Positions 2,562 to 24,740 of a DNA stretch of 64,000 bases are shown here, in pieces (the stretch's first letter is position 1; each line of letters starts with the position of its first letter). The notes below the pieces were generated by a model. It was not told the origin of the DNA, did no database searches, and saw only the letters and a program-made list of their open reading frames with translations. Location of the stretch: the NCBI GenBank assembly GCA_001643675.2, contig LSRY02000029.1:1-64000 (forward strand), written 5' to 3'. The stretch comes from Monocercomonoides exilis PA203 (lineage: Eukaryota > Protista > Preaxostyla). The position numbers and the translations under genes are program-made.

Positions 2562-5516
2562 ATGAATCCTTTCAAAAGAAAACATAACGGAATTGGAAAC
2601 AAGAGCGTCAAACGGGATGTGAAAAATCTAGAAAATATTTTCGGAAAAATGTCGGAAGACCACGCCGAACTTGTTCTCACATCATTTTTACAATCTACGG
2701 AAAAGGAAAAAAACTTTTGGAGGCATTGTCCACTTTGAAAACATGTTTGTATTTGTTTAATTATAAAATACAAAAACAATTATTCTAACAACTTTATTTC
2801 ATTTAAATTTGGATTTTTTATTTACTACAGCTTTTCTGACAGAACACTACAACGAAATAGATCCTCACTCAGATTCAGAAAGCACTGAATCATTTGAAGA
2901 TTATCCTTTGACAAAATGTGATAATAAAAATAAATATATTCATAAACAACATTTTCTGCAGTTTCCATTTGTTAAAATTAAATCAACTAAAAATTCACAA
3001 ATACAACAAGAAAAACAGCTAAGCCTGAGTTCACAACAAATTAGTTCTATCAATTCACAGACAATATACAATACATCAATATTTCGCATTCCAAACATCA
3101 ACAATCCAATTTTAACATCATCATTTATGAATATTGTTCAGTCAGATCCTTCTAATATTCATTCAAATACTTCTCCAGCTCCCTCAATGAATATTGTTCA
3201 GTCAGATCCTTCTAATATTCATTCAAATACTTCTCCAGCTCCCTCAATGAATATTGTTCAGTCAGATCCTTCTAATATTCATTCAAATACTTCTCCAGCT
3301 CCCTCAATGAATATTGTTCAGTCAGATCCTTCTAATATTCATTCAAATACTTCTCCAGCTCCCTCAATGAATATTGTTCAGTCAGATCCTTCTAATATTC
3401 ATTCAAATACTTCTCCAGCTCCCTCAATGAATATTGTTCAGTCAGATCCTTCTAATATTCATTCAAATACTTCTCCAGCTCCCTCAATGAATATTGTTCA
3501 GTCAGATCCTTCTAATATTCATTCAAATACTTCTCCAGCTCCCTCAATGAATATTGTTCAGTCAGATCCTTCTAATATTCATTCAAATACTTCTCCAGCT
3601 CCCTCAATGAATATTGTTCAGTCAGATCCTTCTAATATTCATTCAAATACTTCTCCAGCTCCCTCAATGAATATTGTTCAGTCAGATCCTTCTAATATTC
3701 ATTCAAATACTTCTCCAGCTCCCTCAATGAATATTGTTCAGTCAGATCCTTCTAATATTCATTCAAATACTTCTCCAGCTCCCTCAATGAATATTGTTCA
3801 GTCAGATCCTTCTAATATTCATTCAAATACTTCTCCAGCTCCCTCAATGAATATTGTTCAGTCAGATCCTTCTAATATTCATTCAAATACTTCTCCAGCT
3901 CCCTCAATGAATATTGTTCAGTCAGATCCTTCTAATATTCATTCAAATACTTCTCCAGCTCCCTCAATGAATATTGTTCAGTCAGATCCTTCTAATATTC
4001 ATTCAAATACTTCTCCAGCTCCCTCAATGAATATTGTTCAGTCAGATCCTTCTAATATTCATTCAAATACTTCTCCAGCTCCCTCAATGAATATTGTTCA
4101 GTCAGATCCTTCTAATATTCATTCAAATACTTCAGCTCCCTCAATGAATATTGTTCAGTCAGATCCTTCTAATATTCATTCAAATACTTCTCCAGCTCCC
4201 TCAATGAATATTGTTCAGTCAGATCCTTCTAATATTCATTCAAATACTTCTCCAGCTCCCTCAATGAATATTGTTCAGTCAGATCCTTCTAATATTCATT
4301 CAAAAACTTCAGTAATTTTGGATTATAGTTTTGAGGATTATTTTATAAATTCTATTGATACTTATGATTATTTTATGAAATGCATATTTCGTCCTAAATT
4401 GAAAATAGATAACAAATCCAAATTAAACACAGATTGTATTTATGATAATGCGGAGAGTTTGAATAAATTGGAGTTGAGTGATAAAGATAGTGATGATGAT
4501 GAAAATGAATTAATGAGTATATGTGAAGGAAGATCATTGAATAATTTTGGGAAAACATGTGCTTTCAATTCTTTATGTCAATGTCTTGCTTCATTATGCA
4601 TTGATAAATGCACAAAAGATAGCAACATTTCCAAAAATCAAAGTTATTTTTGAATCTTTTGGAAGAAATTCGGAATCCATCAAAAATAGTGAATGCTTGG
4701 GGAAAGAGGAGAATGAAGAATTTTTATGAACTGCTGTTTGGGTGTCTGGATGAACCAAAAATTTTGACTGACGTGTTTACTGCAGTTATGGAATTCCTAT
4801 CAAAAAATAATTGGAATTTGAAGGAGATGTTTTTGATCCGCAGCCATAGAATAAATATGTGCACCAGCTGCCATCATTTATCTTCATCATTAAGAGGAGC
4901 AGGTTATTTTATTTCAATCGCTGGATCAGATATTGTCGGTGGGTTGAATTGTGTGTTTCAAGCCTCAGATGATTTTGCTGAGAATCTACTTTCAAATTGT
5001 GATAACTGCTGGACGAAATCTGCATTTGAAAACTGGATATGGCTTTACGATTTCCCTTTCATTTTGTGTATTTATCACAAGTTCATTGATGGAGATTATG
5101 TGAGTTCTCCTCCAATCAAATTATTCTTCAGAAGTCAAGGAATAGGCCCAAATGATTTTCATGTGTTCAGTCCTCGTGTGTTATCTTCAATTGACAATCA
5201 TTCATCTGATAGTGAGATAGTTGCAAAATACAACTTCGTTGGAACAATTATCCATTCTTCATTGAAGCATAAAGAAGGGCATTTTATTTCAATAGTCAAA
5301 AATGGAAGTTCTACTGACCATTCCAATGACAGCTTTCTGCAGTGCGATGATGACAAAATTTCAATTATTGACTTCACTAAATGGGACCAATACTGGGATT
5401 ATCTTTCAGAAGAAAAATGGAATTTTTCAATGAGTTTTTCAAACTGTTTGAAACAAAATACAGAAATAGTTCATCAAAACCCTTCTTGGATAAATGAATG
5501 TTTCATATTTTTTTAA
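2562..5516 (+). CDS. Ubiquitin-specific protease (peptidase C19/USP-like) with N-terminal 20-aa tandem repeat; frameshifted in homopolymer runs
   Basis: Cys box SLNNFGKTCAFNSLCQCL (~4534-4587), Zn-finger pairs CTSC and CDNC, His box EGHFISIVK...FLQCDDDKI. Putative exon 1 at 2562-2744 and intron 2745-2830 (GT..AG, phase-compatible). One-base frameshifts in A runs at ~2700 and ~4635. Confidence 0.75.
3127..4310 (+). repeat. 60-bp coding tandem repeat, ~20 copies (MNIVQSDPSNIHSNTSPAPS)
   Basis: Identical units every 60 bp from 3127. One 57-bp unit (3-bp deletion near 4133). Last unit partial. Confidence 0.98.
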
Positions 5517-5989
5517 TATTCATTAGTGCACATCATTAATCATTCCACTAAATAATAAATATCAACTGCGATTAAAACCATTTTTAATTAAGAAAATATG
5601 AAATAAAAAATTGATAATTACACTGCATTAATTCAAATGAATTGACATTAAGTTGTCATATAGAATAACGTAAACATAATAACACGAAAGCATTTGTCTA
5701 TCATTAATTAGTTAACAACCAAGTCATATAAACACCAAGTGTGATGTGGGGATAAAAAAAATAAAGTGAGTGAGAAATGGAAAGTGAGAAATTTAGAGTG
5801 AAAAATGATGTATTGATTTGTATTTACTGGTGAATTATTTTGTATGTTGTCTTTTCTGATATACTTGCCTATGAATATTTATTTCAATACGGAACAAATG
5901 AATATTTCATTTTAAACTTTAGTCTTTTCTTTATTCAATTGGTGTTTTGATCATTTATGATAATTATCAATCCCATTAAAATGATCATA

Positions 5990-7920
5990 TCTATCCCTCC
6001 TCTTTCAATATCTCTTTCCACCATCAAATAAATTCTTTGTCAAATGCCCCTATCGTTCATGTTGGAACTGAAAATAAAAGAAAAAACACTCGGAAGATTG
6101 AATTTATTAGATTTGAACAGTCATCTCTTTGAGTGTGCGAATGGAATGATTCTAATTGAGGAAGTGATTTGGATGGTGCACTTTATGTTCATTCACTGCA
6201 TGTTCAAGAAATGTGAATAATGGAGCGTTATTCTGTCAAAATTTGTTGAAAATCTCTCTCGAAAAATCCAATTTTTCATGTTATCAAGCGAGGAATGGAG
6301 GAGCAGTTGAAGTGTATGCTCCACAATCAAATTCCAAATATCACATTTTGGAAAATAAAGTCGAAAGTTATTCAATAACATGCTGGTGTGGAATTGGTTG
6401 GTATTTTGTACAACAAACAATTCCTGCAAATGGTAAATTCCTGTTTTCCAAATGCAAGTTCATCTCAAATACAGGTGGTGATTCTGCTGGTTCTTTCACA
6501 TTCAATTGGCCTCCACAAAATAAACCAAAACAATGCTTGCTCCAAGAGTGCCAGTTCATAAATAACAAAGTCGAAAATCCAACTACCTATGGTGGTGCTG
6601 CGTTGTGTTGCACAAGAACATATGATTGGATGAATGGAATGAAATTCATCACTTTCTGTTTCTTCAATGAAATACAGCTACTAACGGAAGAGGAAATGAT
6701 GTGTTTTTCAATGGTAATTCCATAACTCAATCTCCGTTTGAGAATTGCGGATCAACAACCCCAACAAAAAAGTGCGGAACAACAACACAGCTGATAATGA
6801 GACTGTCAACAGCTCGCTCCCTCTCATAAGCCAGAACAAAAATGTTGCAAACAACGGAACAGATGTTGATGGCTGTGGAAGAACGCAACAGAATCGTTGC
6901 TCCACTATGGAGTATGCAATCTATGGCTTATTCTTTTAAAAGAGGCTTCCCTCACCCTCCTCAGCTCAACATTTGCTCCCACTCAAACACTTATCTTCCT
7001 TGCTTTTGACACATAAATCAAAGGAAATGGCACAGATACCATCACCATCGCATCAAGCGGAATTCTTCAATCATCATCTTTTTTTTCAGCCATTTCTGCA
7101 CTCTACCGACAGACTCAGGGCTCCCTCACAGTCTCTGCCCTCACCGTCACCCACAACTCCACAAATACCATCACCCCCATCCTCTTCCACCTCTCCCAAA
7201 ACTACCCTTCCCTCAACCTCAACACAACCACCATCACTGGAACAACTCCGTCTTCATCATCAATCACCACACCTCTCTTCTTCCTCACTGCTGGCTCCCT
7301 CGATCTCAACCACACAGCAATCACTCATCTCACCCTTAACAGCCAAAGCATCTTCCATCTCACCTCCCTCACCACTCCCCTCACCCTCAACTCCTCCAAC
7401 ATCACCCACATCACCTCCACTATCACCCCCGCCAGCTGTGTCCTCTCCTCTGCTACCTCCCCTGCCCTCTCCCTCTCCCTCGCCAACTGCACCATCACCA
7501 ACATCAACTCAGAACAGTTCAGCCAACAGACTGCCACAGATGGTGGGTACATCTCATTCGCCTCATCTGCCACTACCAACTCGTTTTCAGTGAGCAACAC
7601 CACCTTCTCCGACTGTTGTGTGAGTGAGGATACAAGTTCTGGAGGAAGAGGCGGTGCTCTCATGATCGAGTTCAATGAAGGCTCACAAGTGTCAGAATCC
7701 TCCTTTGCCATCACCAATATCGTGTTTTCAGCCAACAAGGCCTGTGTCGGAAGAGATATGTATTTTGTGTGTGAATCATTTGTCGCTTCTGTGAAAGAGC
7801 CCTTGTTCACTTTCATGACAAGCATCACTCAGAAAGACAATTCGGCTGTTGGACATGACAGAACAGAAGCAATTGGAATTTAGATTTATAAATCTTTATC
7901 AACAGGCATACAGCTGACAA
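5990..7920 (+). pseudogene. Beta-helix (GGA/FxxN-repeat) adhesin-like surface-protein pseudogene
   Basis: Colinear with the 51531-53102 ORF (VHVGTE, GGAL, FxKCKxIxNTGGDS, MKFIxFCFF, DVDxCGxTQQxxCxTxEYA). Many frameshifts. Continues into GRGGALMI...NKACVGRDMYFVC. Confidence 0.75.
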
Positions 7921-7929
7921 TGAATACGT

Positions 7930-10900
7930 GGAAAACATGTTTGGTGTCAAAGCAATGTATTTCTGGCTATCAAAGATGCCCTGCAAGTGCACACGCAATG
8001 CGACGGGGCTTCTGAAGAAGGTGAAGAACGTTGGTAAATAATAATAAACGTGCAGACAAATTGTGAATTTGTGCGCGCAATAGAAAAACCGAAGAAAGTT
8101 GTGGAGATGGCACACAAAATTGAAGAAAACTGCTCGTATGCGCATGTGATGAAATCAACATAACTTGTCGGACATGTATTCTCTTCTTTTATAGAATTAT
8201 CTGTTAAATATGCCTTTTCATCAAAATTGCTTTCACTCATCGTTTCATCTTCTCAGACATGTTGAAGGCATGTGGCCTTGCGAAATCTCTCGAAAATTAT
8301 CCCTGCAACTGTTTGTTCAAAGAAATCTTTTCCCACCTTGCTCCTTCTTCTTCCTGTTATTCTTTCAATCTCAAAATAAATTTTGTAGAGGCAACCTTCA
8401 TGGATTGTGTGCCCGATGATCGACTATTCTTGATTTGACATTGTAGCATTTCATTTGTAAAATAATTTTTAAAGATATTCCTTGATAGAATAAATATTTC
8501 TTTCGTCTATCTGAGTAGGAATGAAAGGTGATGCTTGGCCCTGGATTTAACGGGAGTTGAATGAAATGGAAATAGGAATATTTTTAATTCGTTCATCGAA
8601 GAAGATGTTGAAGAAGAAGAATGCATAGGAGAATGAATGTTGTGTGTGGAAAATGTCTGTCTGAGAAATTAAAGCTTTCAGATCGTATTTCTCAGAATGA
8701 GAATGTTTTCATTGGCTTATTTTGGAATTCATAAAAAGATGACGATAAGCTGAAGGAATTAAATAGCAAGGAAAAGAGGCAGATAAAGAAGGAAGAAGAT
8801 GAAGTTGCAAAAATAGTTGAAGGAGTTGAAAAAGAAATAATAAGAAAAAGATGATGACGAGGAGGAAGAAGAAGATTATGAAAGCTATGAAGGTGGAGCA
8901 ATTGAGAATTGTGAAACGCATTCAATCCTTTTAATAAAGATGTTGAAAATGACTTGAATGATGTCGACCGATAAAAACACATTATTCGATGAGTTGATTT
9001 CAGATGAAATAGACAATCTTCATCACAAAATATGTGAAAGGGAAAGAGATACAAACAGATGAAGAATGAAGTCCACAAATCGTTGATTGCCTTTGAGTGG
9101 TTGAACTGCTTTGTCCCTCAGAAAAAGAAAATTATCTTTGTCCAATGATGTCAACAATTCAAATGAACTTCATGTTTGATGAGGATATTGGCAGAGAATA
9201 ATTCGAAATCGAAGAAGGCGTTGACAATTGATGAAGTTGACTTCAATTGCAAAAATTTCAAATGAAATAAGAAGAAAATGACGAATTTTATGATTATGTG
9301 ATTGATGTGTCGATTCTGGCAATGAGCATCTTTTATTGAAGTGAGACTGTTGAGAATGATAGCGAAGGTGAAGAAAAATAGAAGATGTCAGGTTTTTCAA
9401 GTCACGTTGGGCGATAGAAAAAACTGAATGTGTTCTGAATGTGAATTCTCATGCAGCTTATCAGCCCAGATAAAAGAGTCGCAACTGCAAAACATTCCGA
9501 ACAAAAATGCCAAATAAACTGCTTTTCTCTTTCTTGCAAACTCATGTTAAGCATTGTCAGGCTATGCAGCATGCAAAACAGATGGTAAGAAACGAATGAC
9601 TTCGTTGAATGCAATCCAAACAAGAATCATCTCAAAACTTCTGGATCTTTTGCAAAGGATTTCAGGGCTTCCCTCTCTTTGTGGTATTCCTGTACTTGAT
9701 CAATTTGTATTCATTGAAAGAACACCTTAAAAGAAAAATGAATGAAATAAAAGAAAATCAAACCATTTTTTTTTCTTGAAATATTTTCCTATCTCCAACT
9801 CACTCGAAATGATCAGCCCACCTGGCTTTCTTGCAATATAAAATTTCCTCTTGCCACAAAAAATTCAGACAACTGGACAATAAATGGCTGGAATAGAAAG
9901 TCATTGAAAGCACAGAATCCATTGTGAAACGAGCTGTAATATCAGATTAAAACACATAATTTTTAAATAAACAAGAAATCAACTCTTTTTCAAAGACTTA
10001 TTTAACGCCATTTCTTTGCTGATAGCTTTCCAACGGGTTTCGCGTAAATGGCAATGCGTTTGTCGTTAAGACCAGCTGAGTGTTTCGCTCTGTTCGCTTC
10101 CTCCATTGTCCTATGCTTCAATTCCCTTTCCTTTTCCACAAAGAAAATCTTCTCCCAAATAAAAAATCACGCAAAATAAGTCCTGAGCATAAGATATACC
10201 AAGTACACAACATTTCGCTCGAAATGAACAAGCTGTTCATTTCAACTTTTCTAACATTTTAATCGCTTTTTTTGTATCTTGCTTTATTCATTTTTCATTC
10301 AAAATATCACAGCCGATGTTGCATCATGTATTTTGCAACATATAACTTGATTCAAACTTCATGCAACTTCCCTCATCAATTCACTTTTTGGAAGCAATCG
10401 ATGCAAACAGCCACCCGCTCCTCCATTTGAAGGCTAAATCCCTGTTCTTCTTCAATGCTATAACTCGCATGAGTGCATCTGTGTTTGCGCTCAATAGTAG
10501 CTCAAATATGCTCAGGCTGCTGCAAATAATTTATCAAAAATCTTCACTAATAAAATTATAGGTTGCAGACCCTTATTAAATAACCAAACAATAAATGAAT
10601 GTTTTGTTGCCCTTCGTCTTGCCTGTTTTGAGGTAAAAGAATGAAAATGATGCAGAGGAAAAAGTTTATGAATGTGCATCTTCAGGTATTTTAATCGATA
10701 TTTGTGACTCTTTTGAAGTAGATGTTCCTTCAACATTCAGAAAATGAACCAATATGTTGCTTCATCTTGATTTTTCCGAAGGCAGCAGGACCAGTAACAA
10801 ATGTTTTATGGTGTGCATGGGGCATTACTGAATCACTGCTTATGCGATTTTATCTGTCCTTTTTTTATTATTATGAAATAAATAAATTTTTTATTGACTT

Positions 10901-11850
10901 TTGAAAGGGGCTTGGGCGATTGAACGATTTGAGGGACCTGGAGCAAAAAGAGAAAAGCGAAGAAATGGATGAAATATGGGAAGATGTGAGATTTGAAGAG
11001 ACGGGTGCGATTTGTGGAGTGGGTTGTTGAAAAGATAATCGAGAAAATTGTGGATGGAAAGGGATTGGGGTTGGTGTTGGGATTTTGGCGTTGGAGTATC
11101 GGGAGATGTTTTGAAGGGCCAAAGGTTAAACGGGACGGTGGCTTGTTTTTCTTTGAAAATGAAAAGATTTGAAAGTAAGAATTCTGATGAAGAGAAGAAA
11201 AACGAAAAATAAAAGGATGAAATGCTCCTGTGGGAATGTTTGCAATGGAACGTAATTCTGAATGAAGGCCTTTCAGTGGAATTGCTGTTGATTTGTGTGG
11301 CTTGCCTGCTGAAAGGTGTGTTGGAGAAAGAAGGAAAGGGAGGAGACTCAAAAAGAAGTTGAAATGAGTTTGCTCGGCTTGAGTCATTTTCACACAACGT
11401 TCAAGTGTGTCTTTTTTTTTTTTCAATTTTTTATTTTTTTTTTTGAAATGTATATATATTGAATAGGAAACAGACAACGAGTGATATTTGAAGGAAGAAA
11501 CAGGAAGCTTCAAGCGCAATCAGTTGCAGCACGATTTGAGGGGACTTGTAAATGGATGAGTTTTGGAGAAATTGATGAAGTGTTTGATGAAGCGCAGAGA
11601 TGGAGGAAGTTAGAGTAAATGAGCTGGGTTTTGGAAGAGAAGATTCAAAAGAAGTGAAAGAGGTGGGAACGCATGTGTATTGGAGAAGAGAATATGATGA
11701 GAGGATAAGAGAAGGGAGAGAATGACTGAACCCTGATGGGTGTGATTGAAAGAAGATGAAGAAGAGGAATTTGAAGAAATCAACATTTTCAGTTTCTGAG
11801 GGGAAAGAGGAGGCAACCACTCAAGAGCATTCGATGAACGATAGATATCC
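7930..11850 (-). pseudogene. Large decayed gene with SWIM-like zinc-finger remnants, possibly transposon-derived
   Basis: Minus-strand reads FCSCDSFIWADKLHENSHSEHI (~9430-9492) and CVCTCRASLIARNTLL*HQ (~7941-7997), plus CPMHH...KQH and CIDC upstream. Many stops. Confidence 0.35.
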
Positions 11851-12575
11851 AAATTATTTGATATGGCTCAATCTGTTTGTGAATTTTTTGTGTTTATGTT
11901 TTTCTTATCAATATGAAGTTCATTTACCATATTCAATATTTTATCTCAATGACAGCATCACATGAAGCCTTTTCATTATCTTCTTCAGAAACATCATTCA
12001 ATTGATTGCACATTTCTCTTTTACTTCATTTCTTCTTCTTATTCTTCTTTACCATCTTCTTCTTCATTCAACAAAAATGAAGCAATTCTTCAATTAAACA
12101 GTGCTTTCTCCAAGTATCTTAATTTTTCTGAAAAATGTTTTTTTCATCTTTCAACGTAACTTATGTTTATTCTTTTTCTCTTTCAACAGTGTCTGTTGTA
12201 TTCTAATAAATTGCTTGTATTGTTTCAAAAGCATGATAGATTTTGTTCAATTGTCAGATGAATTGATTATTTAACAAATAACAAAAAGTGATGAAATGTT
12301 CATGTTATCAAAAAATGAAAAAGAAATGAAAATTGGAAAATATGTGAACTTCAAAAAAATTTTTAAAACATAAAAACAAATAATAAACGATATTAGAATG
12401 ATAACGAATAAATGAAATAAAAATTCGATGAAGATGCAGTTTCAGATACATTTCTTAAAGGTGAATTGTTTCTATTTCTTGTCGCGATGGTGGACTTTTA
12501 GCATTTTTATGAGTCTTCTTCAAAAATTTCTCAAGCACGTTATATTTTTCAAAACATTTTAATGTTGAAATAAAT

Positions 12576-13064
12576 AATGTGAATATGGTTTTTCATTTCA
12601 TAAAATGCATTTTTATTTAATCATAAAAAAAAAATTGAATATATACATATATATTTTTAAGACTCAATAAAATACAAAAACCAAAAAAAAGTCACCATTT
12701 CATGAAAATATGTCAAATTGAAAATCTCGATCACAAAAGTGGTCACTAATTTTTCTTCAGATTTTGCAACAAACAGACATAAAAAGATGTGGGGAAGCGG
12801 TTTGTGCGGAAATCTGAGAAAAAATTAGTGACCACTTTTGTGATCGCCAGTCATTTCAAGTTTCAGTTTTATAATAGTTCCGATCGTTCAACGGATCAAA
12901 TCTGATGAGAACCTTAATAAAAGTGTTTTTCAAAATGACTGGCGATCACAAAAGTGGTCACTAATTTTTCTCAGATTCTTTATGTCTGTTTGTTGCAAAA
13001 TCTGAAGAAAAATTAGTGACCACTTTTGTGATCGAGATTTTCAATTTGACATATTTTCATGAAA
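12576..13064. repeat. Left terminal repeat with nested palindrome (12698-13064)
   Basis: Arm 12698-12856, loop 12857-12932, arm 12933-13064 (inner arm has a ~28-bp deletion). Four alternating copies of CGATCACAAAAGTGGTCACTAATTTTT. Confidence 0.95.
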
Positions 13065-13344
13065 ATTTTCGTATAGAAATATTTATTTATTATTTATATT
13101 TTTTTTTCATATATTTGTTTATGATTTATTGTTATTATGTTATTATAATTAGTTTTAATGAGAAACATTTATGCGTTGATTTTTGGAAAAAGACAAAAAA
13201 TAGTGATATCAGTTTCCAATATCAATTCATCATTTTAATAAAATCAAATTGCATAAATACTTATTTTTTGTGTGAAACATGGTGTTTTTCACCGAAAAAG
13301 AAATGTGACTTTTGTTCCATAATAAATTCAGAAAAATATAAACA

Positions 13345-16300
13345 ATGAATATTTCCAAACCTCAATCGACTCTATATTCTCGATGCAAAGTATTATGGAA
13401 TGAAATTAAGCGCATCGGCGGAGATGACGTGGATTCGTTACTTGCCTATTTGTTTTATTCTTACAGGCAATCAACTTCTGTAATTAACGATTTACTGAAG
13501 ACATTAAACGGTTTGATTTTTTATTTATTCATGTTTTATATAGAAAATTTCATGAACTGTCATTGTTGTTATTTTCTTAACTATTAATTCAATATTTTTC
13601 TCATGAACAGAATATCACATAAAGCTGCTGGAAGACCTGTCTGTGGTGTACAACAACGCTCCTTTGCACACTCAGACAGTAATGCTGCAAGCGCTGTCAC
13701 GCAACACATCATTATCCGATTTACAAGACTATGGATATGATGTCACAGAGGGAAAATTTATTTACGCGAAGCAAACGCTGAAGAAAAACCAAGGATTTAT
13801 CATCACTCCTCTAAAACCTCATCTTCCGTCTTGCAAAAGTGGTTTGTTTTTATTTGAATTTTTTTGAATAATTTTCTCTGTTCATTTTAGGCTTAAATGA
13901 ACAGGATTGGGAAAAGGGCAACAACTGGATGTTAGCCCATTCCACTGAAGCCTCAACTACTCTTCAATCAGCAAAGAAAAAGCAGCGAGCTGAGCCAGAT
14001 TACACAAGATTTATAGATGAAGATGCCTGGGAAAATGAAATTGTTACAGAAAATTCTTCTTCAAAGAAAAAGAAATCTTCATTATCAGAAAAATCACATC
14101 AACAAAATAAAAAATCAAGTTCTATTTCGGAAAAAAATTCATCTGCATCAACTTTTTCATCGTCTGAAGCTATTGATGCTCCAATCAACACCCCAATAAG
14201 GAGAGAAAGGAGGTCAACAAAAAATAAAAAGAATAATTCAAATCACAAACGTCACTCTTCTCCATCTCCAATACCAATTCACAAATTCTTCAAAACAAAA
14301 CAATCGTCAACATATTCTTCTTCTTCTCCTCTTCCTCCTTGTTCTCCTTCTTCTTCTTCTCCTCCTCCTCCTCCTTCTTCTTCTTCTTTTTCTTCTTCTT
14401 CCTCTTCTTCCTCTTCTTCAAATTCTTCTTCTTCAAATTCTTCTTCTTCAAATTCTTCTTCTTCAAATTCTTCTTCTTCAAATTCTTCTTCTTCAAATTC
14501 TTCTTCTTCAAATTCTTCTTCTTCAAATTCTTCTTCTTCAAATTCTTCTTCTTCAAATTCTTCTTCTTCAAATTCTTCTTCTTCAAATTCTTCTTCTTCA
14601 AATTCTTCTTCTTCAAATTCTTCTTCAAATTCTTCTTCAAATTCTTCTTCTTCTTCTTCTCCTCCTCCTCCTCCTTCTTCTTCTTCTTATTCTTCATCTT
14701 CCACATTTTTATTTTCATCTTCTTCCTCTTCATCCAAAAAGCAACAAAAAATGACAATCAATTCTTCATTAACTTGCAATTCTTCTTCATATTTAAGAAA
14801 TGAAAATGATTGGGTGAGCAAGCAATTGCTTGAATATGTCACTTCTCCCACTCTTGTTCCTCCACAGGCATTTCAAGATCTTCTATCTTCATTTGCAAAA
14901 GACAGCAACACTTCTCCATCTCCACAAAACACTCATTCAGACGAAAGTTATAATTCAAATTGTAAAAATAATATGAATATCATTTCAAATAATTACACAA
15001 TGGATTTTCTTCCTGAAATTCAATCTCATTCTCCATCAATTTCTTCAAGTGTCAAAACCACTTCAATCGCTTCATCAAAAACAAAGAAAGGATTAAAAAA
15101 TCTTGGAAATACTTGCTATCTTGCCTCTCTCCTTCAATGTATATCTTCAATCACTTCACAAAAACAATCAATAATTAAAACCATTTCATTTCAAAACAAT
15201 TTATCTTCTCGAGTATTGAGTGTTTGTCAACAACTTACCAAAGATGGAATGACAGTGCGTTCATGGGTCCCATCACTGATCAACAAATGGGAAGACTTTT
15301 GTGGATATAGAAGCAGACAGCAACAAAATGTCATCGAGGCGTTTGACAATCTTCACCAACTTCTTCAAAAAAATGAGTTAATAAACAAGGATACCTTCAA
15401 TCCTGTTTTAATCACACATTTCAAATGCCAAAAATGTCAAAAAATCACATCACACTTCAATGAAATTTGTGACAATGTCGTTATCAATTCTTCTTCTCCT
15501 CACAACGGCCTATCTTCTCTTTTTGCGACTGAAGTTTTAAACGAAAAGAATTGTGTTTATTGCGATGAATGCAAGGAAAAATGCTGTGCTGCGAGATGGG
15601 AGGAAATGGCTGCATTTCCAGAGGTGCTAGCCCTCTGTCATGAATGCACTGATTCTGCTAGTTCAGCACCTTCGAGAACATTACTAATGGAAACAGACAG
15701 AGTCAATCAGCGCACGTTTTGTAAAGGATTTTCTTCTAAAGATATTCAACATCTTCAAAAAGATAATCAAGAAACAATCATATATCATTTTTCTGGACAA
15801 ATACTATTCAAACGTCTGGATCAACAAAACGGACATTACATCGCAGTTGTGAAAAGAAAAAGTGGAATCAATAGTTTTTGGAATATTTGCAATGATGTAA
15901 GTGTTTCTGAATTCGATAGTGACAAATGGAGTTCTTCATGGAAAGATCTTTATGTTCAAGGCTACGTTCCTTCACTTTCATTCTACATCAAGGAAAAAAC
16001 AAAACCAACACTGTCAACTCTTCAATTTGGTGGTTCATCATCTTCTTCAGAAACATCAAATAATAACACTTCAAATAACTCATCATCATCGTCAACAACA
16101 ACAACTGCTACGTCATCTGCATTCATCACACCACCTCATCGAACAACTTCCATTCCTCCACTCTCTTCGTCAATTTCAACAAGTTATGGATTGGAAGCAC
16201 TGAAAGAAAGAAGAAAGAAAACGGGCATCTTTTCTCCCAATGAGAAAAGATTAATCTTCAAGCCCAAGACAAAATTATGGAAAGAGTTTTCAGAAGAAAC

Positions 16301-17486
16301 AAATATTAAAGTTTCATTATCTCACTTCTACAAACTCACAACCAACTTCTCCAAAGCAAAAAGGCGCACAGATCTTTGTGGAATGTGTGAGAAGTTGAAC
16401 TATCTCGAAAACAAACTGAAGTCATCTCAAAACAAAAATGGACTGTCTGAAGCAGAGTTTCATACACTCAAACTTCTTCGTCAACACCGACTTGTTGCAG
16501 AAATGCAACGAAAACACTATCAATCAACTGTTGATAATCTTAAAGAGGGAGAAGCAGTCTTCGTCTTCGACTTTAAAGAAAAATGGAAACTCCCTATCAG
16601 AAAAAATCAACTTCAACAGGAATTCTTCAATTATCAACAAGTTTCTCAATTCACAATCATCTCTCTTCAAAAAATAAATAATCAACTTGAAAAACGAACA
16701 TTCAACTTCTTCTCCGACTGCCTCTCAAATGATCACAGATTTGTCATTGAGTGTCTGGAATCTGTGATCAAAAGGCACTTCTTCTCAGACACTCACACTT
16801 TTAAGTTCTTCTGCGATTCGGGTCCACACAACCGAAATCGCTTCCTTCTTCACTTCATCCTCTCCAAACAATCGAAACTTCTCAAAAAGAAAAATACTCA
16901 ACTCAACTTCTTCGCTGAGCACCATGGAAAAAATATCTGTGATAGTGAATTTGGTGCATTAGTGAATGCAATCGACAACAATCTTTCGACAGAACACATC
17001 ACCACCCTTCATGACTTGATCAACTTCTTCGAAAACAATATGAACACTTCGATATCTGCTTCTTCAACTTCTCAATCAAACATTTTCTCAACATCATCAT
17101 CAAACTCTTCACAATCTTCAACATCTGTCAATAACTTTGAGCATGAGAGATTCTTTGAAGAATATGTACCATCTCAACAAATCTCATGGCCATCATTGTC
17201 AGTTCCCCACATGAAGGACTACTTGTATTTTGAGCGCAAAGGCTCATTTGTCTCTGCTTCAGCTGTTGGATATCTTCCTCAACGCTCTCTGGTTGCCCTC
17301 GAATCTTCAACAATGAAAGAAAAAGTTCAACGTTCAAGAAAGTCATTTCACTCTGATATCACATCATCTAACTCTTCTCTTCTTTCTCAATCTTCTCAAG
17401 ATCTTCTTTCAAGGAGATTTGAGCTTCTTCTTGACTCTTCTTCTTTTAATGAATCTCAAAATTGTATTAATGGTGTCCCTTATTAA
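13345..17486 (+). CDS. USP (C19) deubiquitinase fused to Sola-like DDD transposase, ~1330 aa, 3 exons
   Basis: Exons 13345-13510, 13611-13841 and 13891-17486 join in frame via GT..AG introns. USP: GLKNLGNTCYLASLLQC (Cys 15114), QQNVIEAF, CQKC/CDEC, GHYIAVVK (His 15834), WNICND. Transposase: DLCGMCE...H, VFDFKEKW (D 16569), FCDSGPHNRN (D 16815), FFAEHHGKNICDSEFG (D 16941). Confidence 0.9.
14421..14650 (+). repeat. 15-bp coding tandem repeat (NSSSS)n, ~13 copies plus 12-bp variants
   Basis: AATTCTTCTTCTTCA units, flanked on both sides by SPPPPPSSSS-encoding direct repeats. Confidence 0.95.
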
Positions 17487-17490
17487 GAAA

Positions 17491-17628
17491 CTAGTTGTTG
17501 TGTATGCTTAGCTGGCACTCTATCGGAAGGGTGCTGGACATGACTGTTCGTATTAGATATTGCAGCCCGAAGGCTGCAATATCCGGACCTGGATACGACG
17601 AACAGCCTCCCAGGTGCACAACAGTTAG
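17491..17628 (+). ncRNA. Putative structured RNA (multi-stem with pseudoknot) directly 3' of the transposase stop codon
   Basis: GC-rich island. Stems 17491-17504/17615-17628, 17512-17521/17528-17537, 17544-17551/17598-17605, perfect 12-bp 17556-17567/17572-17583. Pseudoknot ACCTGG 17587-17592 with CCAGGT 17610-17615. Confidence 0.6.
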
Positions 17629-18381
17629 AATCCGATTGTTTTCTTGTGCTTTTTGTCCCTATAATGTCCCTATTATTGAATTGGTTATTATCCCTATAAT
17701 AATTGTATTTATCGAGATTCATTAATAAAGAGAGTTGTGAGGGAATTCATTGATCTTTGGGTAAGGTTTTTGGAAGGGAGAGTTGTTGAGAGTGTGAAAT
17801 GTTGTTTTATCATTGTGTCTGTCTTTTTTCTTTGTTGGATTTGATCTTTTTGAGTCAAAGTTAGAGAAATATCAGAAAGGGGAGAGAGGATAAAAAACAG
17901 ATGGAAAATAGACAAGTTAGTTTTTGTACTTTTTATATAAGTATTCTTTTTTGTTTGGAATTGTCTTTGATACCACGAATTTGTTGAAATTGTACTATTT
18001 CTACTTATATTTTTTATTGTTCAAAATTGTTGATATTTAGTTGATATTTGGTGATTGTTTAATGATTATGTGATTGAATTATGTTTCTTTTGAAAGTTGA
18101 TGAATCTGATTAGAAAATTTCTGACTGTTTTCAATTTTTTAATGATCAATATTGTGAAGTACTTTTTGTTTTTTATGTCATTTTGATTGCAAAACGATTG
18201 TTATTTTTTAACGTATATTTTTCACTTTTCATAGTAAATTTTTCCACTTGTTCACTAAACAATTTATTGATAAACATGTTATATATTTATAAAGATATCA
18301 ACAAAAATAAATTTTTCATAATAATCGATAATATTACAAAACAAATTTCAAAAATTTATCATCATACAACAAAAAGCAAAT

Positions 18382-18898
18382 ATTTCATGAAAATATGTCA
18401 AATTGAAAATCTCGATCACAAAAGTGGTCACTAATTTTTCTTCAGATTTTGCAACAAACAGACATAAAAAGATGTGGGGAAGCGGTTTGTGCGGAAATCT
18501 GAGAAAAAATTAGTGACCACTTTTGTGATCGCCAGTCATTTCAAGTTTCAGTTTTATAATAGTTCCGATCGTTCAACGGATCAAATCTGATGAGAACCTT
18601 AATAAAAGTGTTTTTCAAAATGACTGGCGATCACAAAAGTGGTCACTAATTTTTTCTCAGATTTCCGCACAAACCGCTTCCCCACATCTTTTTATGTCTG
18701 TTTGTTGCAAAATCTGAAGAAAAATTAGTGACCACTTTTGTGATCGAGATTTTCAATTTGACATATTTTCATGAAATGGTGACTTTTTTTTGGTTTTTGT
18801 ATTTTATTGAGTCTTAAAAATATATATGTATATATTCAATTTTTTTTTTATGATTAAATAAAAATGCATTTTATGAAATGAATAACCATATTCACATT
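18382..18898. repeat. Right terminal repeat with nested palindrome (18382-18777)
   Basis: Arm 18382-18541, loop 18542-18617, arm 18618-18777 form an essentially perfect palindrome, followed by the outer inverted segment. Confidence 0.95.
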
Positions 18899-19949
18899 TT
18901 ATGACAATTATAAAAGCGACAATAATAGCAATCAGTGCGATAATTTACATCAAAAATGTGTCAGCCCGCGAATGGAATATCAATGAAAATTAAAAAATAT
19001 AAAATCCACATTCAGAAATTTATCTGAAAGCGATTCTTTTTTTCATGAGTATTTTTTTGTGATTCAACTCGTAAACATCAAATGCTTGCTGTTCATTTCG
19101 TATGCGGCACAAGGCACATATTGCAATCTGTTCTATGCATCGAACGCAAACTCTGAAGCGAATATAAACCGAATATTAGTGGATGAAAAGCGAGAGACGA
19201 ACGACACGCTTTTTCGGATGCAAACCCCTCTGTGTAATTCGCTCGCAAGTTCCACTTACCGGACAGTCTGTACACATACAATGGGAGAGAGTGTGGCAGC
19301 TTTATGGGGTCATATTTTGGATGTAACACATTGCTGATTCAGATTAGTGTGGTGTTAGCAGTGGAAAAAGAGGATGCAATGGTTTCATCCAAGGGCTTAA
19401 CATGACAACTTTGGACATGTTCAAATTGACATCGTGTGTGGCAGATGCGCTGGAGAAGGAGAAGATCATCCGGCCGAATGAGATTGTGATTGTGGAGCAG
19501 ATGCAGTGCATGTCACTTGAAGAGGAGGTATTTGAAGAGGCGAAGCTTGATGCGCCCAGAGCAGCAAACTTTGTGGACCAGCAAGTGAATACAGCTATTT
19601 TCGGTTAATTTTAGTTTTTTTCTTTCAAGATTGCCTGGATTTTCGAAGGAGAGGGAGGTCAGGAAAGCAGAAAAGAAGGCAAAATATTTTGAGCTTGATT
19701 AAAGAAAAGAAAAAAATTCCAAACAGATCGACTTTGGCAATGACGAAGATTTGAAGCGATGTGGTGTGAGTTGAATTTTTCTTTTAATAATAACAAAAAA
19801 TTTTTGTGTGTTAATTTTTTAATGTATTTTTGAATTTTTGAAATTTTCTGAACTTTTTTCCATCATTTATTATGAACTTCATCTTTTTCTTGTGAGTTGG
19901 CCGAATCGGTCATTATATGATGTGTTTATTTACAATCTTCATCGAATTT

Positions 19950-22900
19950 TTTGTTTGGGCCCCCTCTGCATAAAAATCACCGATTCATTCAATCTTTCCA
20001 GTCAGATTGGACTCATTCAAACAATTGCTAATAAGCTCTGTACAAGATGTGATGAAGGCGCTATTCCTGACTTGATAATGTTTGTCATATTTTTATCTTT
20101 TTGTTTTCATTGTTTTTATCATATTTCTTGTTTTTATTTTTTTTAACTTTTCAAACCCTCATTTTAATTTTTACAATTTATTGATACGTAAACATATGAA
20201 CAATCTCTTTTTTTGTTATAATTTCATTCAGTTTCTTCTTTTTAGAGTGGGCAATGGGTCTCCTCCACGATCACCTACCACCGTTTGTGTCATCATTGGA
20301 GTCAGAGCTGATGAAAAAGACTGAACCGGGAACCCTCTTCTGCGCATTTGGCTTCCTCTATTGTCACTGTGTTGCAGCTGACTGTTCATTCCACATGAAA
20401 CGAGACTTCCTCTTCTCACAGACCACTAAACATTTCTTCTCTTCGTCGTCAACTTCTTCTTCTTCTTCTTCCTTCTCAAATCAGTCATCCACAAACCGCT
20501 TTGTAGTTTCCATGTTCGAGTAAGTCAAATACACATCGCAAAATGCAGGAATTATCTTCTCTTTTTAATAAAAGTTCTCCTCTTTTAATGTCACTCCTTA
20601 TCTTCTGTGAATGACACTCCATTCAAACACCACAGATCTCCTTCTCCTCCTCTCTTTTTTCTTACTTTGCCTCAATAAATGATTTCAGCTTCCATCAAAT
20701 GCTCTCTTTCCTCAAATATCCTCGACAGATAGAACATCTTTTTTGTGTAACATCACAAGCACAACCAGAGCTGCCACGAGCCATCAATATGTGGATTCTT
20801 GCAGATCTTCAACATCTTCCAACTCATTCCAACGTTCTTCTTCTTTTGCAAGAACCTCCTTCCACCAAAAGGACATCATTAGGCAGATTTCTTTGTTTCA
20901 TTTACAACATTCAACCACTTTCGCATCTGCAGCCAGCTCCCCAATCAAAAAAGTCGTCTCTTTCTTCCTTTTTACTCAATTTGTGCCACAGCTGCTGGGT
21001 ATTTCAAGCACAGGTATTTATTAACAAAAAACAATAGACAGAAAAATGGAGTCTTTTGCATCATTTATTTTATTTAGCTAACAGCAGCGTCGGATGATGA
21101 GTTGAAGAAATTATTGTTCCCAAATGAGAAATTCATTAATGATATGGAGGTTATTTAGAGAAAGAAGGAGGAAGAGAGAAGGAGAGAGAAAAAGTGAAAA
21201 AGAAGGAAGAGAAATTGAAAAGACTGAAGATGAAGATAAAGAGATATCTGCGGAGCTATGCAGATGAAATATCAACACTTTCTTCTTCAGCCTCTTCTTC
21301 TACACCAAATTCTGTTCTGAAGCTGCTCTCACATCAATCCATAGCATCCACCACTTCTCGGCTCCAATCAGAAAACACGAGAGCCTTCGGCGTTTGGTTG
21401 CAGATTATTCCAATGACAGACGATTTGACAGAAGAATGTGTGTTTCCGGTGTGCGAATGTTTATGAGATAGAAACAGACAAATGAAACAGAACAGGCATG
21501 GTCATAGAAATAATCATTATCATTGACATCAATACAGAAATCATCATCATCATCACATTTTTCTTCATCTTCCTCTTCATCCGAACAGTCAGAAGTGAAT
21601 TCATCACAAGAAAGAGCAGAAAAAGCAGAAATTGATGAAATCATTGAACACTTCAAAAGAAAACATGCGCCGCATCTGCTACTTCCTATGTTCGTTCCTC
21701 CACAAGAAGTAACCCTACAGAATCCGTCTTATGTGTCACGAAGACAAAGACAGAGAAAAAGCAATCAAAATTCTATACAAACATTTTTGACTTATTCGAC
21801 TGCTGGCAAAAGTACAGTAACAGGAACATCTCCTTCTTCATTGCCGAATAAATCTTTTCTTTCTCTTCCTCAGTCATCTCCTTCACCCTCTCCTTCATCT
21901 TCATCTTCCTCATCTTCATCTTCATCTTCTTCATCTTCTCCAGCAGTAACTGACCTCTCTATCCATCCAAAACCACCTCATCGCTCTGAAATTGCTATGG
22001 CGCGATGCATAAGAGCAACGCATCCTCTCTTCCTCAGATGCTATTTCAACCGCTGTGCACAAGTGGCTGCTGCTTCTGGTGCTTCGCGTTCTTCTTCCTC
22101 CTCTTCTTCTGTCAACCAATCAGAGCCAATTTCATTCAGAATCCATTCTTCTGCTTATTCCTCCATTCCACCTGCCATTTCAGCCACTTCTTCATTCAAT
22201 TCCCCCACCTCCTCCATCACAAAGACACAAACTTCAACCTCTTCTTCTTCCTCTTCTTCTTTCTCTTCTTATTCTTATTCTTCTTCGTTGCTGCGCTTTT
22301 CTTGAAACAGATTTCCGACAGGCAAAGAGCAGCAGATTAGGAGGATGAAGCAATCGTTCGGAAGTGGAAGGAAAAGGCAACACTTTTTTCTCGCACAAGA
22401 TGTGTTTGAAGCGCTGCAGCTGTTTGCAGAGTTTCGGATGGTGGAGCGGTATTCGGAGAATCTGGAGAAAAGGATGAGAGAAAGAGAAAGAGAGAGAGAG
22501 CGAAGGAAAGAAAGAGAGGAGCAAGGAACGAGAGAAGAGAGGAGAGAATAATTAGAGAACTGATTAAGATGAGGAAGGCATTGAAATCTACAAATGATGA
22601 AAATAACAATGATGATGAAAAAGAAAATAAAGTGAAAGCAGAAGAAAATGAGAATTTATCATTGATTAGAAGAGATTCTTTGAATGAAACCAAGAAAAAT
22701 GAAGAAAGTGAATGCTTTTCCGACAGCTCCATCATCAGTGATGAAGAAGAGCGAAGAGAGAAGAGACACAAACAGAGAGAGAAACAGAGGTTGATGCGAA
22801 GGTATTACTAGGTGCTTGAGCTTCAACGTGTTTCTGTTGTGAATGAAGTGCTTTTGATGGTCAGGCCAAACCTGCTGCTTTCTCCTGCACCGATTAACGA

Positions 22901-24740
22901 GTCGATAAAAAGACCAGGAATTACTGTGAACGCTGTAAAAAATGAGGGGGATGGCGAAAAGTATGAGAAAGAAGAGAAAGAATGGAATAATTCTTTGAAT
23001 GAAAATGGAAACAAGGAAGAATTTGAAGGAGATGAAGATGGAAAAGATGAGGAAAAGAAGTGATTTTGGAGGATTTAATGAACAACCCCAAAGCAGTATT
23101 TTCAAAAGCAAATATAATCAAACAGAAGCAGAAAAGAATGAAAACACGAAAGAATCAATTCAAAACGGTAAAAAAGACGAAACGCGTTCAGATGAGCCAA
23201 AGCCAGAGCCTCTTTCATCGCTAGCTCAGCAAAAACAGCAGCAACAGAACATAACAACAATTTCCCCCACCTTCATCTTCTCCTTCTCCTCAACATATAC
23301 AATCCTCTTCAGAACGAGGCACCTTTGGAACAATACACTTTACGCGAGGGAAGCGAATGGACGGTGGATGAAGAGGATTCGGAGGGAGAGCTTTGATTGC
23401 GTACAGCCAAGAGATGGAGATGGGGAGAGGGGCTGTTGGTACACCTACAACTCCGCTGTCACCTGCTGTTGGAGGAGGAGGAATTGGAGGAGGAGGAGGA
23501 TGGGTGACGTTGAGTGTGATGGGAATGAAGGATTTGAACAAAGAAGTGACAAGGGCGATGCAAGATGAGCTTCAGAATGAGAAAGGGAAAGTGGACGATG
23601 AAGAGGCGAAGATCATGTTCAGTTCATTGGAATCTAATGATCAGAGAGAAAAACTGCTTCGGCTGATGAAACAACAGGAAATACAGAAGAAGAAAAAGGA
23701 GAAAAAAGAAAAGCGGGAGCGCAGGAAAATTGAGAAAGAAGAAAAAGACAAGAATCTGTTTAGCAGCATCCAAGGAATACTGCAACCTTACATTGAGATA
23801 GGCACACCAATTAACCAGAAGGAGAACAAAATGGCAAGCGAGGCGCAACAAGAGTCAAAAGAAACCCAGACGCCGGTTTTGACAAGAGAGCTGAAATTGG
23901 ACTGCATGCTGAATGATTTAGCTAATTCTGACCTGGAAGATTTGAGCGATGAACTGGATTTGCCTTGCCGCTATGCGCGAATCAAAAGCGAGGAAAACGG
24001 TCAATTTGTGTGGAAGATGCGGAAGGTTACTGTGTATGATGTACTTGATGCGAGGCAGATGAGAACGCGGTTGGATCTGATGAGGCTCTGAAGAGCGGGC
24101 TGAGGCAGAACAGTGCAGAACTGCGAAGAGGAAGCAGAAGTGACACACAGGAAGGGAAGTAAAGAAGCAGGGAAAGGATCGCTTCTGCTGTTTCAGAAGG
24201 AGAAATGGACAAGAACATTCAGTCAGAGCAGCATGCCTGGAAGAAGAGATGCACTGTCGAAGCTGTTTTCTTTGCTGTCGTTATCAAAGTTAGCTTATTT
24301 ATTCACGTCGCAGAATTCAATGGCAATGGATCTGATGCAGAAATAACCTGCCCTCAATTCGGTTGCGCCTTTTGATTCAGCTGCTGATCTTGCTGTAAAT
24401 ACAAACATTGCTCTTCATCCTCTTTCTCATTGCGCCTCTTCACTTGTCGATTCATCCTTTTTAATGAACATCCAACTTCAATCTTCTCCTTCTCTCAGAA
24501 CATCTTTATCTCCTTCACTGCAGTCCCAAGCTAAACTTCCATCTTCTACTAGTCTTGCTGATCCTGGCTCTCTTTCTCTACTCTCACGTCCTGCTCTATT
24601 TTCGTCTCCTTCTCTTTCATTCAGCTCCCGTCAAATTCATCATCAGGCCTCATCTTTTATTTTCTTTTCCGAAACGCAAAAGGATTATTTATTCTATCGC
24701 AGAATATCAGCTGAAATTATATGTCAATGGAAGTGATTCA
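19950..24740 (+). pseudogene. Decayed low-complexity host gene of unknown function (copy 1)
   Basis: Chain of broken ORFs (21523-22305, 23393-24091 etc.) with a paralog at 36941-39400 sharing e.g. KLDCMLNDLANSDLEDLSDELD and KSEENGQFVWKMRKV. Confidence 0.6.

Follow-up and report, generated by a model that had tools for sequence, protein, structure and literature searches.

Two large palindromes stand on either side of an intact transposase gene in the genome of Monocercomonoides exilis (contig LSRY02000029.1; the window is the whole stretch of 64,000 nt that was analysed), and their asymmetric centres point in the same direction. About 44 such palindromes occur genome-wide. The locus raises the question of how the orientation of these centres arises, and whether the palindromes are the ends of a mobile element, as the initial annotation had labelled them.

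We began with the anatomy of the window copy. An inverted repeat of 310 nt pairs 12576-12885 with 18589-18898 (96% identity). Overlapping with it, 12682-12969 is repeated directly at 18367-18654 (98%), and because of this direct repeat both cores have the same orientation at the two ends, in agreement with the initial annotation. Each palindrome consists of two 175-nt arms that match near-perfectly around a 76-nt asymmetric core. Beyond lies an outer segment of about 106 bp; it is indeed inverted between the ends, as had been proposed, but is shorter than the ~120 bp given before. The right palindrome (18367-18792) pairs perfectly up to 18541/18618 and leaves the 76-nt core 18542-18617, which is self-complementary at only 17 of 38 positions. 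Folded as single-stranded DNA, it reaches -208.9 kcal/mol (z = -35.9). The left palindrome (12682-13069) is built in the same way, except that its inner arm is short by about 27 nt. Pairing leaves exactly the two loops that had been described from the sequence. The features are:

12576-12681, + strand: left outer segment (O) of the long inverted repeat
12682-12856, + strand: left palindrome, outer arm; motifs 12728-12754 (+) and 12820-12846 (-) form a sub-hairpin
12857-12932, + strand: left 76-nt asymmetric core (loop), in the same orientation as the right core
12933-13069, + strand: left palindrome, inner arm; deletion of ~27 nt near 12969-12979; motifs 12943-12969 (+) and 13008-13034 (-)
13315-18249, + strand: stretch common to most of the gene family, with the gene for a USP and Sola2-like DDD transposase (predicted)
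18367-18541, + strand: right palindrome, inner arm; motifs 18413-18439 (+) and 18505-18531 (-)
18542-18617, + strand: right 76-nt asymmetric core
18618-18792, + strand: right palindrome, outer arm; motifs 18628-18654 (+) and 18720-18746 (-)
18793-18898, - strand: right outer segment (O')

The arms themselves contain sub-hairpins (47-nt arms, 87% complementary, 25-nt gap) and a 27-bp motif. Both the sub-hairpin in every arm and the eight motif copies of the initial annotation were recovered: exact copies start at 12728, 12820, 12943, 13008, 18413, 18505, 18628 and 18720, four per end and in alternating orientation. Genome-wide, the motif has 175 matches at up to two mismatches, compared to none for a reversed control. 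When copies are compared, the motif columns are about 10 times less variable than the remaining arm sequence. The motifs are putative conserved protein-binding sites, and the most likely candidate for their binder is the transposase. An Rfam scan of the window returned no match.

The initial annotation had predicted a mixture of flipped and unflipped loops among copies. Tabulation of core orientation in the 15 two-ended copies revealed all four combinations (two ++, five -+, six +- and two --), with the two orientations about equally frequent at both ends. Assignment was clear in each case, since every core has 0-8 mismatches to one orientation and 40-43 to the other. Of 30 palindromes, 29 have a core of exactly 76 nt and the remaining one a core of 75 nt, and inverted cores carry 0-3 mismatches in most copies. 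With a core of constant length and a clean inversion, the breakpoints must lie inside the perfect arms. On a tree of 17 copies, at least nine orientation changes are required (five left and four right), which is near the 5.4 and 5.6, respectively, expected from shuffling. Orientation is heritable and not noise, as it agrees at 7/7 cores of near-identical duplicate loci (chance 1/128 if orientation were random). The left core of the window is inverted in near-identical duplicates on contigs C91 and C87. Over most of their length, the window copy and the one on C91 show about 0-1 substitutions per 250 bp; they are set apart by the flip of one core, an arm deletion and a ~1.5-kb patch with a divergence of 4.7%. 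This shows that ectopic conversion acts on these copies.

These orientations were read from the assembly, for which ONT reads were assembled with Canu and polished with Nanopolish and, in ten rounds, with Pilon. As artefacts of assembly or polishing, both the orientation of a core and the indels in an arm might be unreliable. Flipped and unflipped forms have every k-mer up to 151 nt in common, which is why k-mer-based Logan contigs are unable to orient the core, and the repeated Pilon rounds acted on such sequence. The authors of the assembly themselves remark that multi-copy regions are poorly polished. Furthermore, the loci on C24 and at the end of C66 are 100% identical save for small indels within the palindrome, so that consensus quality is lower there. 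However, an artefact would hardly agree at all seven cores of near-identical duplicates or leave clean 76-nt inversions with 0-3 mismatches in most copies. ONT reads (N50 8.9 kb) span the entire structure, and the inversion of a whole cassette on C8 (see below) is impossible as a k-mer artefact. We consider an artefact unlikely, and the flip-flop of the cores looks genuine.

How would the cores flip? The reading that we regard as probable is homologous recombination and gene conversion among the four arms, leading to core flips, cassette inversion and deletion. The 6.3-kb stretch is in this reading a gene cassette bracketed by long inverted repeats, each made of outer segment, 175-nt arm, 76-nt core and an inner copy of the arm, which gives four arm copies in total, two per orientation. 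Exchange between both arms of one palindrome would flip the 76-nt core, while exchange between the outer repeats would turn the entire cassette around within its flanks. Where the exchanging arms are in direct orientation, the cassette would be lost and a solo palindrome left behind, and slippage would cost an arm plus core, or parts of an arm. Conversion tracts that extend from end to end would keep outer segment, outer arm and core identical and restore the symmetric state. Inversion by inter-arm recombination, one of two mechanisms offered by the initial annotation, fits the data: a clean 76-nt spacer is inverted between perfect arms, and the changes recur on the tree.

Comparison of the ends within copies pointed in the same direction. 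Outer segment, outer arm and core show 0-3 mismatches between the ends in 9 of 13 fully scored copies. The left outer segment has no mismatch to the other end in 9 of 13, and such perfect end-to-end identity could partly be a polishing effect. Evolution of the arms is concerted: within a copy, the outer arms have no mismatch, as opposed to ~6% between copies, and subfamily-diagnostic substitutions are found on both arms (110 symmetric derived cells versus 104 single ones). Inner arms differ by 0-18 substitutions between the ends. In some copies they are 5-10% diverged from the outer arms, a distance that would hinder exchange.

Larger rearrangements were found as well. On C8 the 6-kb gene cassette is inverted relative to its flanks, compared with the sister copy on C63. 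Solo palindromes (C53, C80:918k, C17:511k, C33, C41:187k and C30:311k) have the same flanks as full copies, X/Y or W/Z, and are therefore in-situ deletions. This speaks against the earlier suggestion that each end could excise by itself as a foldback unit; among solos with known flanks, we found no hairpin-only unit that had inserted alone at a new site with a duplication. Outside this set lies one small O-O' unit at C42:284162-284612. An origin from two MITE insertions was rejected, as each end is without the inner outer-segment expected of a complete solo. From the observed variants, their spread among copies and the patterns of identity we infer general recombination as the agent.

We next consider the gene between the palindromes. 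It contains a continuous ORF (13929-17486) with a possible upstream ATG at 13345, and Pfam recognised only a USP domain in it. In the catalytic region, D129, D211 and D253 are invariant among 56 relatives, as are D63, C65 and C68. The C-terminal part is predicted by AlphaFold2 to fold as a DDE/DDD transposase (pLDDT 85), with Z = 10-10.7 to integrases and Mos1. Foldseek gave weak matches only, to RNase H-fold transposases; the wide structural search was clearer, and a PDB sequence search with the family profile gave only noise. The blocks RTDxCxxC, DFKE, xDxxxHF and HGKxxxD are the same as in the published Sola2_DFa-2 and Sola2_PPa-1 proteins in a comparison of the motif blocks made by eye. 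With a modelled RNase H-fold core, a DDD triad and a preceding RTDxCxxC block, the cassette protein is, as judged from sequence and predicted structure, a Sola2-like DDD transposase into which a USP protease is inserted. The gene family has at least 97 genomic copies, the majority without palindromes. In most of them homology is limited to 13315-18249 and the repeats are missing, so the label of element ends is unproven. Outer-segment-like copies listed in the genome number 37.

We then turned to the surroundings of the palindromes. On both sides, conservation among copies continues outward from them for 1.5 to 8 kb or more, and the copies lie in only two flank contexts (X/Y and W/Z). In most other copies the inverted repeat reaches ~130 nt further outward than in the window copy. 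The corresponding features are:

4500-12575, no strand assigned: left flank, repeated at 83-100% identity beside other copies of the palindrome structure
12439-12460, + strand: short palindromic motif that marks how far out the longer inverted repeat of other copies reaches; partner at 19009-19030 (-)
18899-23898, no strand assigned: right flank, likewise repeated; from 19437 on also an independent repeat of higher copy number

The palindromes could still mark where an autonomous Sola2-type transposon truly ends, its terminal repeats being very long; two or three of its insertions would later have been copied with their surroundings. The strongly conserved motif arrays, symmetric at both ends, the intact gene between them and the abrupt stop of the inverted repeat would fit, as would two distinct flank contexts that have only ~310 nt and ~675 nt in common beyond the first motif. 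Against this, homology between the contexts extends 25-390 nt past the inverted repeat, and the terminal repeats of published Sola2 elements are only 12-22 bp long (PMC3627910). The 4-bp AT-rich duplication of Sola2 transposons is absent: no matching 4-mers were found at the outer-segment edge, the edge of the longer inverted repeat or the limit of inter-context homology, and the initial annotation had likewise seen no clear target-site duplication. Empty sites were not found either, as 13/13 copies of the Z flank and 15/15 of the left extension are occupied. Beyond the cassette, only low-complexity matches turned up when the left-flank unit was searched for a terminal repeat. The true termini of the mobile or duplicated unit may lie elsewhere. 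We regard this explanation as improbable, and a role of the palindromes as true ends of a mobile element is unproven.

Alternatively, the cassette's own transposase might act site-specifically on the motif-bearing arms and drive core flip, cassette inversion and deletion. Four alternating motifs per end with their tenfold conservation over the neighbouring arm, the balance of both orientations at both ends and the coding of a putative DDD enzyme of RNase H fold are in line with this. However, breakpoints cannot be assigned to the motifs, and ectopic conversion patches elsewhere in the gene suggest general recombination. Moreover, flips are missing between near-identical pairs, and switching is therefore slow. 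We thus hold an enzyme-driven flip to be very unlikely; if true, a eukaryotic DDD transposase would serve as an invertase, and its target would be a cassette in the interior of a larger block that is duplicated or mobile.

A hairpin-resolving, parvovirus- or telomere-like replicon in which hairpin transfer flips the palindromes at the ends, the analogy drawn in the initial annotation, would explain the ~1:1 core orientations and the very stable hairpin, but is hardly conceivable and was rejected on anatomy, because the palindromes are not molecular ends: they are enclosed by the 106-bp outer segment and by chromosomal DNA that is conserved over kilobases, flips occur between copies whose flanks are still identical, the gene combines a USP domain (Pfam) with a predicted DDE/DDD fold, the scanned flank ORFs gave no Pfam match except a sub-threshold one (CFAP61_dimer, 19.7 bits versus a cut-off of 27.9), and neither an HUH nickase (Rep) nor a telomere resolvase was found by Pfam in the gene or these ORFs.

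With recombination among the four arms as the preferred reading, M. exilis offers a natural isomer series at ~35 loci, in which four states, a cassette inversion, solos and one-arm ends occur within one genome. It thereby becomes possible to measure, in a deep-branching eukaryote, how fast palindrome spacers invert, arms convert and palindromes decay. The locus is also a warning that such structures are not orientable by short reads or k-mer assemblies, and that repeats which look 'terminal' in one copy may sit inside a larger repeated block. Finally, an anatomy is added for an uncharacterised and very abundant transposase family, in a genome in which 35% of the sequence is unclassified repeat.

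Several known systems resemble this structure in part. In the flip/flop ITRs of parvoviruses and the hairpin telomeres of poxviruses, a linear replicon physically ends in its palindromes, and a nickase or resolvase takes part in the hairpin transfer that creates the isomers during replication. What they share with M. exilis is an asymmetric palindrome centre in two isomers at ~1:1; physical ends, hairpin transfer and nickase or resolvase are all inapplicable to M. exilis.

Sola2 DNA transposons (Bao, Jurka and Kapitonov 2009) include the dictyostelid DFa and PPa families and are large (10-15 kb) and mosaic, with short terminal repeats (PMC3627910) and 4-bp AT-rich duplications. The M. exilis protein has the same catalytic signature blocks as Sola2_DFa-2 and Sola2_PPa-1. 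In contrast to these elements, the protein carries the inserted USP protease domain, and the gene stands between long inverted repeats that bear palindromes. Neither 4-bp duplications at the three boundaries examined nor 12-22-bp terminal repeats were found, but the true termini may lie elsewhere.

Foldback-like elements with long terminal repeats are known from Drosophila FB and Galileo (PMC2775673, PMC4168063). They share with the present structure internal repeats within long inverted repeats, short hairpin-only derivatives and inversions by ectopic recombination. Unlike the M. exilis copies, which have two flank contexts and no duplications, Galileo and FB insert at many sites with duplications. 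To our knowledge, core flipping has not been described for either, and a literature search found no such report.

Closest are systems in which a spacer inverts between inverted repeats, such as the minute hairpin-loop inversions of chloroplasts, the yeast 2-micron plasmid and the spacers of human Y-chromosome palindromes, the latter also with arm-to-arm gene conversion. As here, an asymmetric spacer lies in perfect inverted arms and occurs as both isomers, changes are homoplasious on the tree while the arms evolve in concert, and deletions reduce the structure to one arm or to a solo. M. exilis is set apart by nesting on three scales (76-nt core, 6-kb cassette and sub-hairpins in each arm), by four arm copies around a transposase gene, and by a homogenisation that is strongest between distant outer repeats rather than between the arms of one palindrome.

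The anatomy and coordinates that the initial annotation had described for the cassette, a ~6-kb segment at 12576-18898 in which two palindromes bracket a Sola2-like USP-transposase gene, were borne out. Positions 12576-12885 and 18589-18898 form an inverted repeat (310 nt, 96%), and 12682-12969 and 18367-18654 a direct repeat (98%). Both palindrome centres therefore share one direction, in agreement with the directly oriented loops reported earlier. Pairing in the right palindrome is perfect as far as 18541/18618, so its core is exactly 76 nt long (18542-18617); this core is self-complementary at just 17/38 positions. The left palindrome is like the right one, but its inner arm is ~27 nt shorter. 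Folded as single-stranded DNA, the 426-nt palindrome reached -208.9 kcal/mol compared with -44 kcal/mol for shuffles (z = -35.9). We also recovered the sub-hairpin inside every arm (47-nt arms, 87%) and the 8 exact copies of the 27-bp motif in the window that had been noticed before. Genome-wide, this motif has 175 matches at up to 2 mismatches, versus 0 for a reversed control. Short palindromes also form the arm boundaries (TTTCATGAAA) and those of the longer repeat (12439-12460 and 19009-19030), and the inverted duplications may thus have originated by fold-back copying.

Core orientation was analyzed in 15 two-ended copies, 2 copies with a one-arm end and 3 solos, i.e., single palindromes without cassette. 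With the gene as reference, the core orientations (left, right) of the two-ended copies were ++ (2 copies), -+ (5), +- (6) and -- (2); hence the predicted flip/flop mixture exists in all four combinations. Each core differs by 0-8 mismatches from one orientation and by 40-43 from the other, and its length is exactly 76 nt in 29/30 palindromes and 75 nt in 1, indicating that the breakpoints fall within the perfect arms. On a tree built from 2.4 kb of internal sequence, orientation must have changed at least 5 times on the left and 4 times on the right, compared with 5.4 and 5.6 for shuffled labels. At 3-10% divergence, orientation is therefore nearly randomised.

The genome (82.3 Mb, 101 contigs) corresponds to a published ONT assembly (PMC8767320), for which Nanopolish and ten Pilon rounds were used in polishing; its nearest matches among database proteins carry the name Monocercomonoides exilis. 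The core isomers have all k-mers up to 151 nt in common, and consequently short reads and de Bruijn contigs are unable to orient the core. In three near-identical pairs and in the window compared with the end of contig C66, 7/7 cores were concordant, which argues that orientation is inherited and not assembly noise. At two otherwise identical loci, small indels are the only differences, and these are confined to the palindrome. To the extent that an assembly can tell, the core flip-flop is real.

The cassette gene is a single open reading frame:
13929-17486, ORF of 1185 aa with serine-rich repeats, a USP/UCH domain and a C-terminal domain

The USP/UCH domain matches PF00443 (4.5e-11). The C-terminal domain has 715 relatives and no Pfam family of its own. 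Its profile (56 relatives) revealed invariant D129, D211 and D253 plus an RTDxCxxC block, and an AlphaFold2 model (pLDDT 85) predicts an RNase H-type core, whose similarity to retroviral integrases and Mos1 scored Z = 10-10.7. The RTDxCxxC and catalytic-D blocks are visible in both published transposases Sola2_DFa-2 and Sola2_PPa-1. Of 469 candidates, at least 97 were scored as copies of the gene family, and many of these copies are intact. Within the ORF, a 15-bp tandem array (14246-14792) encodes an SSSSN repeat whose length varies among near-identical copies. Large insertions within the cassette are found in the copies C91:1339383-1355461 (~9 kb) and C66:40300-50299 (~3 kb).

The window and its duplicate on contig C91 show ~0-1 substitutions per 250 bp across most stretches. 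They differ by a flip of the left core, an arm deletion, tandem-repeat length and a 1.5-kb transposase patch (window 16076-17575), which is ~4.7% diverged from the otherwise near-identical C91 copy. Judged from its sequence, this patch looks like a gene-conversion mosaic, an ectopic tract from another family member. Window positions 1-24000, the start of contig C24, match C66:259364-269241, C87:15741-34901 and C91:4-15124, stretches located at or close to contig ends, with 97-100% identity for no less than 16 kb. Segmental, perhaps subtelomeric, duplication may account for them, or contig ends may have been assembled redundantly.

The label "element ends" for the palindromes found no support. 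In most family members homology to the window is confined to ~13315-13352 through ~18222-18249 and the palindromes are absent, and the DNA beyond 12576 and 18898 is itself repeated beside other copies. The flanks fall into two contexts.

Left and right flank types around the copies
X[..]Y: window, C80, C63, C91, C17 and C8; solos on C53, C80, C17 and C33
W[..]Z: two copies on C69, and C19, C24:271k, C56, C45, C91:1653k and C66; solos on C41 and C30

Homology extends outward for at least 3 kb on the Z side, 8 kb on the X side and 5 kb on the Y side, but beyond the first motif the two contexts have no more than ~310 nt in common on one flank and ~675 nt on the opposite flank. Among 13 Z-flank copies and 15 left-extension copies in the genome there were no empty sites; all were occupied. 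A 4-bp duplication was absent at every candidate boundary examined, consistent with the earlier remark that no clear TSD is present. Published Sola2 elements measure 10-15 kb and carry 12-22-bp terminal repeats (PMC3627910), so it is plausible that the long repeats are internal to a much larger candidate unit.

Several further repeats occupy this neighborhood. A diverged inverted-repeat pair (6806-8566/24615-25569, 70%) surrounds the whole region, and the left copy of this pair falls within a high-copy repeat (6004-8618), which is particularly frequent on contig C25. Another, independent repeat (19437-23898) has a higher copy number, and at least 10 of its copies, all without palindromes, begin abruptly at 19437; the distance to a transposase gene is ~4 kb in two of them (C41, C47) and ~15 kb in three others. 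The left flank block is co-duplicated with the cassette at C80:1108759, C91:1331825, C33 and C32, and at least partly includes a stand-alone USP gene (2562-5516; the flank search started at 4500). The Z-flank copies split ~1700 nt from the palindrome into two sequence classes that diverge at a (GCAGAAGAA)n tract; by sequence, this resembles the outcome of recombination between paralogous genes within a coding repeat. In two metagenome runs from bovine gut, 6-8% of the left end's sampled words were present, which may represent a related protist or low-complexity sequence.

Within one palindrome the arms differ by 1.3-2% (first set, 30 palindromes), compared with 5-6% from copy to copy. The sharper pattern is, however, identity from end to end, not from arm to arm. 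Outer segment, outer arm and core showed 0-3 mismatches between ends in 9/13 fully scored copies, in which the inner arms differed by 0-18 substitutions. All 9 copies with near-identical ends had a symmetric core state; in the 4 copies with directly oriented core, the rest of the repeat is near-identical. Subfamily-diagnostic substitutions are present on both arms, and derived cells per column amount to ~0.2 in motif columns versus ~2.0 in the rest of the arm. Other rearrangements were found as well. Between its flanks on contig C8, the entire cassette runs opposite to that of the sister copy on C63 and to that of the window. Solos carry the core in either orientation and are remnants of deletion between directly oriented arms. 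Two copies have one end reduced to a single arm with the core missing, and small deletions within arms are common.

Recombination and conversion among the four arm copies fit these variants and identity patterns. Conversion in long tracts from one outer repeat to the other would keep both identical, core included. If the outer arm of a palindrome exchanged with its inner arm, one core would flip, yielding an asymmetric state as in the window; exchange between outer repeats would flip the cassette, and exchange between direct arms would delete it. The excess of symmetric core states (11/15 two-ended copies), statistically insecure given shared ancestry, would follow from end-to-end conversion. 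The analogy to parvovirus-like termini drawn in the initial annotation is unsupported. Ordinary inverted-repeat recombination is the best explanation of the flip-flop; the inter-arm route proposed there for loop inversion fits the arm-confined breakpoints, the identity patterns and the other rearrangements. Accounted for by such recombination, the palindrome system is a multi-scale variant of an already known process.
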